Sequence record: PV785814.1
Length of the DNA stretch: 64,000 bases
Reading direction: 5' to 3' (one strand)
The translations under genes and the position numbers were made by a program. The notes under the pieces were generated by a model. It did not search any database, was not told the DNA's origin, and saw only the letters and a list, made by a program, of their open reading frames with translations. Shown piece by piece: positions 20,853 through 51,678 of the stretch; within the stretch, counting starts at the first letter, position 1, and the number at the start of each line of letters is the position of its first letter.

Positions 20853-21888
20853 TTTGCCAATCGAAACAAAACAGTCTATCGTTAAAGCATCTGCTAACGG
20901 TATGACACAGAAAGACAACGCGGCGAAGCATGGTACTTCGCCAACTACTCTGCGCCGTGTGCTTGCTGAACACCGTGAAGGCAAATTTAGTCTGAACACT
21001 GCGAAACAAATCGTTAAGCGACCTGCAAAAGTTAAGTCACTTTCGACTGACTTCAAAGCTAATCTAGACGAATTGCTAGACGCTACTGGCACTAAAACTG
21101 AGCCAACTCAGAAGATGAAAGCGCCTGAGCCTGAAAAGACTCTTGATCAGAAGCTAGAAGAAGCGATTGAAGACTTCGCTTACGTGATTACGCCAGTCAA
21201 CGTGTCGTTTACCTTTAAAGGTCAAGCGTTCTCTGCTGACATTACAGCACCGAACTACAGCAAAATCGTTGCTGCATTGCTTGAGTCTGACGGTGAACTT
21301 GCAGTGTCATTGCTTGATGTTGCTAAAGGCATCGAAGAGTTCATGCTAGGCAACGTAGTTGTCAAGGGTGGCGTTGTTAAGTATCGTGATCTTGACATCG
21401 ACGGTGGCATGACTGACCGCATTCTTGAAGCAATGGAAGAAGGCGACAAGTCTCAAGTGACCAAGCTAGTGAAGTTCTTCGAGAACCTAATCACTAACCC
21501 GTCACGTCGCGCTGTAGAAGAGCTTTACGGCTTCTTAGAAGCTGCTGACATCGAACTAACAGACGATGGTCACTTCTTAGCGTACAAGAAGATTCGCGAC
21601 AACTACAACGACATTCACAGCAATAGCATGAGCAACAAGCCGGGTACTCGCGTGTGGATGCTACGTCACCAAGTGAACGACAACAAAGATCAGACTTGTT
21701 CTGCGGGTCTGCATGTATGTTCGAAAGGTTACTTGCCACACTTCGGTGGTGCTGCTGGTAATCGCGTTGTACTGTGTAAAGTCAACCCACGTGATGTTGT
21801 GTCTGTACCAAGTGACTACAACAATACTAAGTTGCGCTGTAGCGAATACCTAGTTCTGAAAGAGCTAGACAAAAATACTTTGAAATAA
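20845..21888 (+). CDS. rIIB: rIIB protein
   Basis: N-terminal HTH-like segment, C-terminal QTCSAGLHVCS..Y..VKVNP.DVVSVP.DYN..KLRCSEY. Confidence 0.9.
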   Translation: MVNLPIETKQSIVKASANGMTQKDNAAKHGTSPTTLRRVLAEHREGKFSLNTAKQIVKRPAKVKSLSTDFKANLDELLDATGTKTEPTQKMKAPEPEKTLDQKLEEAIEDFAYVITPVNVSFTFKGQAFSADITAPNYSKIVAALLESDGELAVSLLDVAKGIEEFMLGNVVVKGGVVKYRDLDIDGGMTDRILEAMEEGDKSQVTKLVKFFENLITNPSRRAVEELYGFLEAADIELTDDGHFLAYKKIRDNYNDIHSNSMSNKPGTRVWMLRHQVNDNKDQTCSAGLHVCSKGYLPHFGGAAGNRVVLCKVNPRDVVSVPSDYNNTKLRCSEYLVLKELDKNTLK

Positions 21889-22317: not shown

Positions 22318-22957
22318 GTCATACGACGAACACGGTGTTGTGCAGTATAATATGCTGCTAATATTCTCTTTGATTATAGCAGTGTCTATGTCAATAGCAT
22401 TAGTAGCATCAAATATTCTGTTTGCATTCGAAGTGAATGACGTGACTGCCAACATCAAAACGCCAGGTGATGCATTCTGGACTGTATGGATGGCTATGAG
22501 CACAATCGGTTTTGGTGATCACTACCCTGTTACTACTGGTGGTCGAATCGTGATTGGCTCGATGTTTGTTGTCGGTGCGTCTCTGATTGGTATGAATATC
22601 GGTATTGCTAATGCTTGGATGTCGTCTAAGTTCGACAAGAGCATTCAGAATCGCGTGTTGAAGACACAAGGTGACGCTTCATTTCAGAAGCTTGACCGTA
22701 TCGAGAAGTTTCTTGGTATTGATCAGACTGTTGTCTTCAGCGAAGAAGCTCACGGTATTGATCAGCAAATCGAGCAGAAGATGGACACTAATGGTGACAT
22801 GGAATGCATCATCACGTTTGGTAAAGATGATAGCGGTCGCTATGTAGTTGCAATCAATGAGCGCAACGTCGAAACGGATGTAGCTGCACTTCGTTGGCAT
22901 ACTTTCTTACATAAGCCAGAAGCAAAAGCATTTTACGATAACTTTAAAGGTGTATAA
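22292..22957 (+). CDS. Two-TM potassium channel (KcsA-like pore) with cytoplasmic C-terminal extension
   Basis: TM - GDAFWTVWMAMSTIGFGDHYPVTTGGR (K+ selectivity filter TxGxG) - TM. Confidence 0.88.
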   Translation: MKRLKKHIKSYDEHGVVQYNMLLIFSLIIAVSMSIALVASNILFAFEVNDVTANIKTPGDAFWTVWMAMSTIGFGDHYPVTTGGRIVIGSMFVVGASLIGMNIGIANAWMSSKFDKSIQNRVLKTQGDASFQKLDRIEKFLGIDQTVVFSEEAHGIDQQIEQKMDTNGDMECIITFGKDDSGRYVVAINERNVETDVAALRWHTFLHKPEAKAFYDNFKGV

Positions 22958-23528
22958 AATGAAAATTCGCACAATCGCAATCGTTAGTATGATTGCAGTA
23001 CTTGCGGGCTGTGATAATGGCTCTGCTACTCTAGACACAAACGCATACTATGCCGAGCAAGGTCAGTCGTTAATGCAAGCGCCAACGGTAGATGACTTTC
23101 CGCCAGTGAATGATGTACAAGAAGTTGTACAACAACCTGTACAACAAGCGCCAGTTGTCATTCATCAATCTGAAGATGAGGGATTCGATTGGGGTGCGGC
23201 TGCAATTGGTTTTGTAGCGGCAGAGATTGTTGATGATGTCTTTGATTCTGGCAAAAAGAACTACATTGCACCGACTCAAGCGCCAATTATCAACAAAGTG
23301 ACACCGTATCAGACAAAAACTGCGCCTGTAATCAAGAAAGTAGAGCCAGTAGCTCCCGTGAAGCCTGTTGAAGTGAAGAAAGTAGAGCCGAAAAAGTCTA
23401 CTGAGTTGAAGAACAAGAAGCCTACTACAATCAAGAAAGTAGAAAAGCCGAAGAAAGTTCTGTCTAAGCCAAAGCCTAAGAAGAAATCGAGTGGGTTTAA
23501 GGTGAAGTTTGGTAAGAAGAGACGATGA
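22950..23528 (+). CDS. Lipoprotein with Lys/Pro-rich C-terminal tail
   Basis: Signal peptide ending in lipobox LAG-C. Confidence 0.7.
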   Translation: MYKMKIRTIAIVSMIAVLAGCDNGSATLDTNAYYAEQGQSLMQAPTVDDFPPVNDVQEVVQQPVQQAPVVIHQSEDEGFDWGAAAIGFVAAEIVDDVFDSGKKNYIAPTQAPIINKVTPYQTKTAPVIKKVEPVAPVKPVEVKKVEPKKSTELKNKKPTTIKKVEKPKKVLSKPKPKKKSSGFKVKFGKKRR

Positions 23529-23651
23529 GAAAAGGGGCAGAAATGCCCCTTTGAAATTAAAAAGCGAGGGAGGCGACTATAGTAGAACCAATACTCGCAG
23601 TGACCAATGCGATAACATAGTCACATCCCTCGAAACTGTAAAAAATGTTTC
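23529..23651 (-). ncRNA. Candidate structured small RNA (three-way junction)
   Basis: CGAGGGA/TCCCTCG, GACTAT/ATAGTC, AGTA/TACT and CGCA/TGCG helices; TAAATA late-promoter core on - strand at 23662-23657; terminator downstream. Confidence 0.5.
23530..23552. terminator. Bidirectional intrinsic terminator
   Basis: AAAAGGGGCA-GAAA-TGCCCCTTT. Confidence 0.85.
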
Positions 23652-23716
23652 TATCTTATTTAGTGTTTTGTTACGTGTTGCATAGCAATTATCTCAATAA
23701 AAATCTGAAATAATTA

Positions 23717-23745
23717 TTGACTAAAGTGTAAAATATGCGTATCAT
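23717..23745 (+). promoter_or_regulatory. Early promoter
   Basis: TTGACT-17-TATCAT. Confidence 0.75.
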
Positions 23746-23794
23746 ACAGCATATAAAGACGAAACGTTCAAAAATCCAACAAAAGGTGTATAAA

Positions 23795-24211
23795 ATGACT
23801 CCAAAATCGTTAATTCGCGCCGCGAATACAGTAGTTTCTGAATTGCAAATCTTCAACGGCTCAGACAGCACAGTTGTTGTTGGCAGACCTGGGAGTGGTA
23901 AGAACGCTATGCTGATGGGAATGCTCGTTCAGCGTGGTGTGCGAGAAGGCACAATGATTGTTACTGAGCAACGTCACACTGAAATGGCAGCAAAACTAGG
24001 TGAGGGTTCACTCGTTATTCAAAGCGGGTTAGATCTTGAGTCTCTTATCTCTTCAGTTGCGTTTGCGTGTGCTCAAGAGCGTGAGCACATCTTTATTGAA
24101 CACGTTACGCCAATTCTAGGTCACAATATTGTTGAGATTCTAGAATCAATCGCTAAACCATTTGGCAAGCGTATCTACGTTGCCATGCAAGCATCACGAG
24201 GTAGTCTATGA
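23795..24211 (+). CDS. Small P-loop-containing protein (possibly degenerate ATPase)
   Basis: VVVGRPGSGKN Walker A-like motif. Confidence 0.55.
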   Translation: MTPKSLIRAANTVVSELQIFNGSDSTVVVGRPGSGKNAMLMGMLVQRGVREGTMIVTEQRHTEMAAKLGEGSLVIQSGLDLESLISSVAFACAQEREHIFIEHVTPILGHNIVEILESIAKPFGKRIYVAMQASRGSL

Positions 24212-25248
24212 ATGTACTATACACGAGCCTATTCGGTTCAAAACTATATGGCACAGACACGCCAGAGTCAGATACTGATTACAAAGCTGTCTTCTTACCA
24301 GAATTGCGTACACTATTGCGTGGTGTTGCAATCAAGAACTCAGTTCATTCAACTGGTAAAGCGTTCTCAAAGAACGGCGCAGAAGATGAAGACTTCGAAT
24401 ACATCCCTGTTCAAGTGTTCATGCGTGACTTTCTAGGCGGTCAGTCGTATGCTATCGAGTTAGCATTCAACGCACTACAGAACCCTGATGACTGTCACCC
24501 TGCGTTCCATGCTATGTGTCAAGAGCTAACACGCAAATACTTGACATCAAACGTCAAAGCAATGACTGGTTATGCACTTAACCAAGCGCAGAAATACGGC
24601 ATCAAAGGCACACGACTAAACAGCCTAATGGAATTTGCACGTGCTGTAGAGACGCACAACGTCGATTCTAAAGCGAAGTTGGGTTCAAGCCCTGAGTTGT
24701 GTCAACGTCTATGGGAACTAAGCGCAGAAGACGCTCACGTGCGTTTTCAGTGGTATCACGGGCCCAAGACTACAGACGCAAGCGATTTGCAAGACCCTGC
24801 GTTCAGCGTGCTTGAAAAGGTATTCGGTCTTGAAATCTCATTTGAAGAAGCGGCTGGTCGTCTTGAGAAGATGATGAGCAAATATGGTGCGCGTTCGTAT
24901 CAAGCTCGTGCTGCTAGTGGTTCAGACTGGAAAGCGATCTCTCATGCTATGCGAGTAATCGATCAAGCAATCGACATCCTTGAAGTTGGTAAGCTTGAGT
25001 TCCCATTGAAGCACGCTGCATTCTATCGTGACGTTAAAATCGGTAAGTACACGTGGGAATACGTCTCTGAAGTGCTGCAAGAACGCCTTGAGAAGCTTGA
25101 AAATGCAAAAGCTACAACGTCACTTCCTAACCATACGCCAGATTTAGTAGCTCAATTCTACATGTGGTACGACGATTATCTTGACGAGTTCTATTTCCCG
25201 TGTGAAATGACCGAAGAAGAAGTGAAAGAAATGCTGGGTGCTTACTAG
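24208..25248 (+). CDS. Pol-beta-superfamily nucleotidyltransferase (T4 NrdC.11-like)
   Basis: LFGSKLYGTDTPESDTDYK (GS..DxD); DWKAISHAMRV in the C-terminal helical domain. Confidence 0.85.
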   Translation: MNVLYTSLFGSKLYGTDTPESDTDYKAVFLPELRTLLRGVAIKNSVHSTGKAFSKNGAEDEDFEYIPVQVFMRDFLGGQSYAIELAFNALQNPDDCHPAFHAMCQELTRKYLTSNVKAMTGYALNQAQKYGIKGTRLNSLMEFARAVETHNVDSKAKLGSSPELCQRLWELSAEDAHVRFQWYHGPKTTDASDLQDPAFSVLEKVFGLEISFEEAAGRLEKMMSKYGARSYQARAASGSDWKAISHAMRVIDQAIDILEVGKLEFPLKHAAFYRDVKIGKYTWEYVSEVLQERLEKLENAKATTSLPNHTPDLVAQFYMWYDDYLDEFYFPCEMTEEEVKEMLGAY

Positions 25249-51640: not shown

Positions 51641-51678
51641 TATTTATACTTGACAGCTATTTATAGCTCCTGTAGAAT
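51641..51678. promoter_or_regulatory. Back-to-back late (-) and early (+) promoters
   Basis: - strand TATAAATA (51648-51641); + strand TTGACA(51650-55)-17-TAGAAT(51673-78). Confidence 0.8.

Follow-up and report, generated by a model that had tools for sequence, protein, structure and literature searches.

The YUNR loop motif is typical of antisense RNAs, and leaders of the attenuator or riboswitch type in the 5′ untranslated region (UTR) of an mRNA can release a trans-acting short RNA, as exemplified by SreA and SreB of Listeria. To our knowledge, hardly any regulatory RNA has been described from virulent T4-like phages, and the ~50 sequenced KVP40-like vibriophages, a group used in aquaculture phage work, carry no annotation of one. 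Here, a candidate is described from Vibrio phage QD01, a KVP40-like relative of T4 (Straboviridae) that infects V. natriegens. The element lies in an unannotated gap of 266 nucleotides (nt) between the end of QD01_147 (23528, plus strand) and the start of QD01_148 (23795, plus strand), where an early operon with nrdC.11 begins; coordinates refer to the analyzed window of 64,000 nt from record PV785814.1 (window coordinate = record coordinate − 62000), whose bases 23000–24300 match QD01 with 100% identity. A sequence-only reading of this window had proposed a late small RNA (sRNA) at 23529–23662, folded into a three-way junction with twin UUGGU loops. Comparison with related phages indicates that the minus strand of the gap most probably specifies a structured RNA that is non-coding and made late, and on balance favors the view that both of its loops pair antisense with the start and the 3′ end of the mRNA of the QD01_305 family and repress its translation, with an additional role as a leader in most relatives.

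The predicted RNA resembles Sok/hok, CopA/CopT, and IstR-1/tisB in its short structured form, its Rho-independent-type 3′ end, and its exposed UUGG loop starts, which fit the Y-U-N-R motif. It does not correspond to a type I toxin–antitoxin system, because its putative target encodes 191 amino acids (aa) rather than fewer than 60 and is ~76 kilobases (kb) distant. As in trans-encoded sRNAs and antisense RNAs, a conserved seed of 11–12 nt is complementary to a conserved site in the translation-initiation region of the predicted target, covering the Shine–Dalgarno spacer of a membrane-protein mRNA in the classic geometry of translational repression. Unlike those trans-encoded sRNAs, the element is located in a virulent T4-like phage, behind a putative late (gp55-type) promoter and ~76 kb from its putative target, and its two loops are predicted to contact sites at opposite ends of a single mRNA for a 191-aa protein. 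With attenuator-derived sRNAs such as SreA and SreB, it shares the position as a gene leader (in 44 relatives) and a helix that ends in a U-run, where early termination would free a short stable RNA and read-through would give the mRNA. It differs from them in that it has neither a ligand nor a known aptamer family, in that the basal helix itself would be the terminator stem, and in that the downstream gene is missing in QD01 and in phage 1.081.O.

The helices, loops, TAAATA motif, and terminator hairpin described in the sequence-only reading were all recovered at the positions given there. In plus-strand letters, they comprise an outer helix (CGAGGGA, 23565–71, with TCCCTCG, 23626–32), a second helix (GACTAT, 23575–80, with ATAGTC, 23617–22), and the two hairpins AGTA-GAACCAA-TACT (23581–95) and CGCA-GTGACCAA-TGCG (23596–611). 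On the minus strand, the two helices merge into a basal helix, whose 5′ strand CGAGGGA-U-GUGACUAU (23617..23632) pairs with the 3′ strand AUAGUCGC-C-UCCCUCG (23565..23580); the internal loop, which had been expected to gain a pair on this strand, closes to G-C and U·G and leaves one U·C mismatch in a helix of 16 base pairs (bp). Above it, also on the minus strand, are hairpin a (CGCA-UUGGUCAC-UGCG, 23596..23611), whose loop and 3′ arm form seed A (UUGGUCACUG, 23607–23598), and segment b (AGUA-UUGGUUC-UACU, 23581..23595), which is a weak hairpin in QD01 and contains seed B (AGUAUUGGUUCU, 23595–23584). The region 23529–23662 folds with a z-score of −5.6 on the minus and −6.3 on the plus strand, with none of 200 shuffles as stable on either strand, and the core alone has z-scores of −3.4 to −5.9 in eight homologues. 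The claim that the region contains no open reading frame (ORF) holds, because the frame of a 13-codon ORF inside the element is lost among relatives (GUUAU in QD01 vs GUAU in KVP40); both this ORF and an AUG-UGA mini-ORF were rejected as coding because indels do not conserve their frames.

The element was detected by blastn in 47 phage genomes, all of them KVP40-group Vibrio phages. A diverged copy is present in phage 1.081.O, and a further variant, reached through the neighboring protein, is located on a 3-kb ENA metagenome contig (L266); in total, there are eight distinct sequence variants, which form the basis of all variant counts given here. The conserved part is short: only 66 nt align in phage nt-1 (94% identity, with unalignable flanks) and only ~80 nt in F86 and the D482 group. 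Its location is constant: it always occupies the side of the QD01_148/nrdC.11 operon that faces rIIB. When the eight variants were combined into a covariance model, this model found exactly one copy per genome; minus-strand scores were 50–92 bits, plus-strand scores did not exceed 25 bits, and a scan of 236 kb of QD01 yielded no second copy. Pattern scans with the 16-nt core in large collections of metagenome and genome contigs returned chance matches only (~280 are expected per 596 gigabases), none of them with flanking helices; in IMG/VR, only KVP40 and VH7D are represented.

Covariation across related phages, which would be expected if the region had been correctly read as a functional RNA, is present in the basal helix. 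In an alignment of the eight variants fitted to the model, both sides have changed in 9 of 15 pairs of this helix (15–16 bp), and 94.9% of the cells are paired; its covariation score was reached by none of 500 shuffles, and controls with slid helix positions pair in just 33–47% of the cells. Folding of each variant separately by minimum free energy (MFE) recovered the basal helix in all eight cases, despite sequences as different as UGAGGG/CCCUCA in nt-1, CGGGAU/AUCCCG in F86, and an inner helix ACUCGG/CCGAGU in place of GUGACUAU/AUAGUCGC in L266; in D482, the helix comprises 16 continuous pairs, four of which are G·U. The stem of hairpin a (CGCA/UGCG) is moderately supported (81% of cells paired, one double-sided change), whereas that of hairpin b (AGUA/UACU) is not (76% of cells paired, no double-sided change), and RNAalifold resolved only the basal helix in the fitted alignment. 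The proposed three-way junction thus stands with respect to its basal helix but not to the AGTA/TACT hairpin, which is weak and does not covary; segment b probably serves as an exposed seed and lacks a stable stem.

The same comparison distinguishes the two strands. When the basal helix is read on the minus strand, G·U cells outnumber A·C cells 11:1, and the MFE is lower on the minus than on the plus strand in all eight variants (e.g., −32.3 vs −19.6 and −31.7 vs −21.0 kcal/mol), with a difference of 6–13 kcal/mol in the three most divergent variants (D482, L266, and 1.081.O). Together, this points to the minus strand as the functional one and to a constraint on RNA, which agrees with the original assignment of the transcript and speaks against the alternative that loops of a plus-strand RNA mimic ACCA. 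It is also why an element acting at the DNA level (a protein-binding palindrome, a cruciform, or an origin-related site) or a plus-strand RNA structure appears highly improbable, even though the plus strand folds well (z-scores of −2.2 to −5.2) and a strong early promoter (23717–23745) adjoins the element within a divergent regulatory region. The sequence of the helix changes freely while pairing is kept, unlike in protein-binding palindromes, and on the plus strand the element would fall after a terminator and before a promoter.

Two other structural ideas were discarded. An alternative “switch” helix between 5′ GUGACYR and the YGGUCAC of loop a seemed conserved in six variants and was dropped because it cannot form in L266 and 1.081.O. 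What we took to be a resemblance to type I-F CRISPR repeats (TCACTGC...GTAT..GG), and hence the idea of an RNA anti-CRISPR, was rejected because no repeat-like hairpin is possible.

The apical part of the element is conserved as sequence. A block of 19 nt (GGUCACUGCGAGUAUUGGU) is almost invariant across the eight variants; GGUCAC in hairpin a is present in all of them, and segment b is nearly invariant although its stem is not.

There is good agreement between the region upstream of the helix and late promoters of related phages. In the schizo-T-even phage Aeh1, late promoters have the consensus CTAAATA, whose first base lies at −12, and T4-type late promoters follow a spacing rule of −12 to −6 (Nolan et al. 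2006, PMC1524935); the CTAAATA type has been reported also in PMC2988020. In QD01, the TAAATA core noted in the sequence-only reading is spanned by CACTAAATA (23665–57, minus strand) and belongs to the motif ACTAAATA (23657..23664, minus strand), an exact match to the (A/G)CTAAATA form of Aeh1; as in late promoters, the 8-bp motif (T/A/N)(A/C)TAAATA occupies −13 to −6 and there is no −35 element. The sequence NCTAAATA occurs upstream of the element on the minus strand in all eight variants, at a distance of 2–27 nt from the helix, as ACTAAATA in six of them, as CCTAAATA in F86, and as TCTAAATA in 1.081.O. In QD01, it also precedes gp34, gp48, gp4, QD01_103, and other late genes by 17–46 nt, among them genes for tail fibers, the baseplate, and head completion; the motif of the element differs in that it would drive a non-coding RNA instead of a structural gene. 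Both the TATAAATA and the NCTAAATA form are in use in QD01, and motif copies in this genome are followed by an ORF start in 7 of 10 (TCTAAATA), 13 of 14 (TATAAATA), and 7 of 7 cases (AATAAATA).

According to the published Aeh1/T4-type spacing, transcription would start at the G at 23651 (minus strand), 6 nt past the motif; in nt-1, the basal helix would begin with +1 by the same rule. The resulting 5′ leader of QD01 (23633..23650, minus strand) ends in a conserved ACAGUUU (23639–23633), and six of the eight variants have CAGUUU(C/U) ahead of the helix, the exceptions being nt-1 and 1.081.O, in which the promoter borders on the helix. Neither a small 5′ hairpin (GAAAC/GUUUC) predicted in QD01 nor a sigma-70-type minus-strand promoter inside the element is conserved, the latter being absent from F86. 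At the other end, the basal helix is directly followed by a U-run (CUUUUU, 23559..23564, minus strand), a possible first termination point that is present as four to six U in six of the eight variants; 10 nt past this run on the minus strand, QD01 has a GC-rich hairpin and then UUUUCUC. This putative bidirectional terminator (23531..23552; 9-bp stem, GAAA/UUUC loop) appears in the folds of both strands, and, like the basal helix, combines a GC-rich stem with a U-run in the manner of an intrinsic terminator. The predicted RNA would therefore be ~93 nt or ~124 nt long, and the comparative evidence is consistent with the ~120-nt non-coding transcript from late promoter to terminator that had been proposed.

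Two further minus-strand sites with such motifs in the window concern other genes. One is CCTAAATA at 52–59, which precedes the start of QD01_103, a minus-strand gene, by 32 nt and is likely a late promoter of the C-at-minus-12 type within a mostly early plus-strand region. The other is a pair of TATAAATA motifs 17 nt apart (51641–51665) in the gap upstream of QD01_220, a lone minus-strand gene for an immunoglobulin-like protein and probably a late gene in otherwise early surroundings.

In most relatives, the element is followed by a gene. In 44 of the 47 phage genomes that carry it, a minus-strand gene of the KVP40.0150 family starts 25–35 nt past the U-run; the family (phrog_14713) comprises membrane proteins of ~180 aa, whose Pfam matches to holin-like domains are below threshold. 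Judged by this arrangement, the RNA is the 5′ leader of that gene in those 44 phages. It might therefore be nothing but a cis-acting leader or attenuator of the KVP40.0150-family gene, whose basal helix and U-run stop the majority of late transcripts, whose apex binds a read-through factor, and whose copy in QD01 is a functionless recent relic, and both the lack of space for another promoter between the element and the gene and the U-run past the helix in six of the eight variants are in line with this. However, the gene has been lost in QD01/VS1/VS2 and in 1.081.O, each time with promoter, RNA, and terminator retained and with the hairpin terminator occupying the place of the gene in QD01 and 1.081.O. 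The two groups differ in their deletion junctions, and the tree of QD01_148 places 1.081.O outside the clade of QD01, KVP40, nt-1, and VH7D (98/99 support), although its position in the nrdC.11 tree is unresolved. Two independent gene losses with retention of the RNA argue for a function of its own. Moreover, conservation of the apex far exceeds that of the adjacent protein (47% identity between KVP40 and nt-1), and a leader does not explain two conserved complementary sites in a distant mRNA. A purely cis-acting role is thus unlikely overall, and it is not exclusive, because the RNA could be both leader and trans-acting.

The mRNA in question comes from QD01_305, a late gene that lies beyond the window (minus strand, 161393–161968 of record PV785814.1) and carries its own copy of the motif TATAAATA. 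A search of the QD01 genome for complements of the invariant block identified an exact match of 11 nt at −11..−1 of this gene. Its product of 191 aa has an N-terminal hydrophobic helix (single-pass) and a coiled coil, and a transmembrane helix is annotated in the homologue of 1.081.O. The gene is flanked by a distal tail-fiber gene on one side and DUF2829/asiA on the other, which we take to be the map position of the holin gene t in T4.

Conservation of the first site supports a pairing with the RNA. QD01, KVP40, VH7D, D482, and F86 have the same 19 nt ahead of the AUG, although the proteins are just 47–86% identical; by contrast, the spacers ahead of QD01_148 vary freely among relatives. Seed B (AGUAUUGGUUC[U/C]) can form 11–12 bp with −12..−1 of the QD01_305 family in five lineages, with 11 Watson–Crick pairs and one G·U pair in QD01 and 12 Watson–Crick pairs in KVP40 and VH7D; the match comprises 7 bp in 1.081.O and 13 bp with one mismatch in nt-1. 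In the latter, a change from U to C in the seed is accompanied by a change from GGAACC to GGACC in the target, giving 10 contiguous pairs over the Shine–Dalgarno sequence. A pairing of seed B with its target would explain why segment b is conserved as a sequence and not as a stem.

The second site is located at the other end of the same mRNA. Seed A can pair with CAGUGACC(G/A)A, a stretch overlapping the QD01_305 stop codon and located just ahead of the A-run and terminator of the mRNA; this complementarity (~10 bp) is present in six of the seven phages with both loci. In D482 and F86, the stop codon is located upstream and AGUGACCAA is still found in the 3′ UTR, so GUGACC(A/G)A was kept despite the moved stop; in 1.081.O, the loop reads UCGGUC and is complementary to GACCGA at site 2. 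Compensatory changes of seed and target were seen once for seed B (nt-1) and once for seed A (1.081.O), among only seven phages. Predicted duplex energies range from −15 to −20 kcal/mol for seed B and from −12 to −17 kcal/mol for seed A, with z-scores of −3 to −7 in six of the seven phages, and the cross-pairings (seed A with site 1, seed B with site 2) are weak. By a rough estimate, chance would place ~0.008 such 12-mers in any start region of a KVP40-sized genome and ~0.003 such 10-mers elsewhere in the same 700-nt mRNA. The comparative evidence thus seems to agree with the earlier view of the loops as RNA-binding sites.

A variable, covarying helix with an invariant apex is, however, typical also of RNAs that bind proteins or ligands, and the pairing with the mRNA rests on complementarity. 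The element could accordingly be a decoy, sponge, or scaffold for an RNA-binding protein or nuclease of the host or the phage, with the apex as recognition site and coincidental complementarities. Because this would require that two conserved complements of 10–12 nt in one mRNA and the co-change of seed and target in nt-1 have all arisen by chance, and because it comes without a known partner, it is quite improbable as an explanation.

Several observations weigh against a late antisense RNA directed at QD01_305. The structural evidence derives from only eight distinct variants, and the pairs were counted in an alignment that had itself been fitted to the model. The RNA runs listed for KVP40 consist of low-depth contigs that carry no direction, and none is listed for QD01. 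A very stable basal helix with a U-run would suit a plain attenuator or terminator equally well. Both predicted pairings are weak in 1.081.O (−8 and −10 kcal/mol), and seed A of D482 has a C·A mismatch. In QD01 alone and at loose thresholds, at least one co-located complement turned up for 710 of 1000 shuffled probe pairs; since such complements are common, the target call rests on the length of the match, its position, its conservation, and a few covariations. QD01_305 has no recognized holin domain: Pfam gave nothing significant, PHROG assigned it to phrog_15749 (function unknown), and a sequence search of PDB returned a coiled-coil match only. The likeness to gene t of T4 is restricted to topology and to the position beside the distal tail-fiber gene and asiA, so the link to lysis is positional only.

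If antisense repression of QD01_305 nevertheless applies, the RNA would be transcribed late from the ACTAAATA promoter, starting near 23651 and ending at the U-run (~93 nt) or at the hairpin terminator near 23530 (~124 nt). The basal helix would hold up the apical domain, in which the near-invariant 19 nt are displayed as two UUGG loops of the YUNR type. Seed B would cover the Shine–Dalgarno spacer up to −1 of QD01_305 and thereby block ribosome binding, seed A would bind the stop codon or 3′ UTR just before the terminator of the mRNA, and synthesis of the membrane protein would be delayed or limited. In the 44 related phages, the same RNA would double as the 5′ leader of the KVP40.0150-family gene, which QD01 has lost. 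A bolder version, which is tentative and somewhat doubtful, has a virulent T4-like phage time its lysis by RNA, with two U-turn loops that clamp both ends of a putative holin mRNA until a threshold is reached and, in most relatives, with the same transcript as an attenuating leader that couples a second membrane protein.

In either form, this is a compact, conserved RNA with a specific and falsifiable prediction of two target sites in a late membrane-protein mRNA at the holin position. If true, it would add an RNA layer to late gene control, possibly including the timing of lysis, and would provide a clean natural example of one sRNA that contacts both ends of one mRNA. The variant on contig L266 offers a direct prediction: its seed is AGUAUUUGGUUA, and if the pairing is true, the start region of the target in the phage behind this contig should read ...UAACCAAAUACU.

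Loop a also has a 9-nt complement (AGTGACCAA) inside the coding sequence of rIIB (21456–21464, plus strand), which was treated as a coincidence because ~30 nine-mers are expected by chance genome-wide. In 1.081.O, a local 9-bp hairpin with a GAAA tetraloop (CGACUAUGC-GAAA-GCAgUAGUCG; L257:2340–2365, minus strand) replaces the usual inner helix and linker, and the seed of this variant has no GUA. The apical domain thus appears to have been remodeled in the lineage where both predicted target pairings are weakest.

The sequence-only reading had offered a different function for the loops, namely that UGGU binds the ACCA 3′ ends of tRNAs, as in T-box antiterminators, and is perhaps tied to a nearby nucleotidyltransferase gene. 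The element does resemble a T-box antiterminator in displaying an unpaired UGGN tetranucleotide, with UGGU present in both loops, and the phage encodes 29 tRNA genes and enzymes of the RNA-repair type, including an nrdC.11 product with a weak match to RlaP in Pfam. However, it has neither the Stem I with specifier loop nor the T-box consensus, the covariance model RF00230 does not match it, and no gene for an aminoacyl-tRNA synthetase or for amino acid metabolism follows downstream; in relatives, the downstream gene encodes a transmembrane protein of unknown function (phrog_14713), and in QD01 there is none at all. The conserved block of 19 nt far exceeds UGGN, and the additional bases fit an mRNA rather than tRNA ends, because nothing 3′ of ACCA is left to pair with the first U of UUGGU; the loop complements in the late mRNA comprise 10–12 nt, compared with the 4 nt shared with tRNAs. 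A link to the nucleotidyltransferase was not found: nrdC.11 is part of the early operon that diverges from the element on the opposite strand, and QD01_399, located elsewhere, encodes the CCA-adding enzyme. Binding of tRNA ends is therefore hardly credible.

Other known families did not account for the element. A cmscan search of 22500–24800 against Rfam 15 (E ≤ 10) matched no family to it, the whole window had no match at the gathering score, and searches of four relatives gave no match on the element at E ≤ 1; sub-threshold matches fall only on unrelated terminators. As far as covariance models can tell, the element is new to RNA databases.

A tRNA search of the whole window found none. ARAGORN places the 29 tRNA genes on the minus strand at ~174.5–183.5 kb of the QD01 record, outside the window; the GenBank record lists many tiny “hypothetical protein” ORFs over that region, and the tRNA cluster appears to be unannotated or misannotated. 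The element itself is affected in a similar way in some relatives, where ORFs of 30–40 aa are annotated as hypothetical proteins over the element or its promoter, on the minus strand in F86 (L004:3064–3156) and on the plus strand in the D482 group (L005:2987–3109). These small ORFs, which lie on opposite strands in the two records, are most likely spurious, which corrects the annotation of several records.

Among the neighboring genes, the nrdC.11 homologue (24208–25248, plus strand) matches Pfam RlaP with 22.4 bits, just below the cutoff of 23, and also phrog_388 (nucleotidyltransferase). RlaP is a Pol-beta nucleotidyltransferase of an RNA-repair pathway. QD01_148, its upstream neighbor, encodes a P-loop protein (GxxGxGKN) that is restricted to this phage group. 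The strong sigma-70-type early promoter at 23717–23745 (TTGACT-17-TATCAT, plus strand), which would drive the QD01_148/nrdC.11 operon, carries AAAGTGTAAAA in its spacer. The same sequence recurs at this place in KVP40, VH7D, D482, and nt-1, and looks like part of an extended early-promoter consensus of the KVP40-like group. In KVP40, the interval between rIIB and the element contains a gene for a GIY-YIG homing endonuclease (KVP40.0146; L002:66–761, minus strand) that is not present in QD01. This difference marks the interval as one in which genes are frequently gained and lost, a pattern in keeping with the disappearance of the minus-strand gene from QD01.

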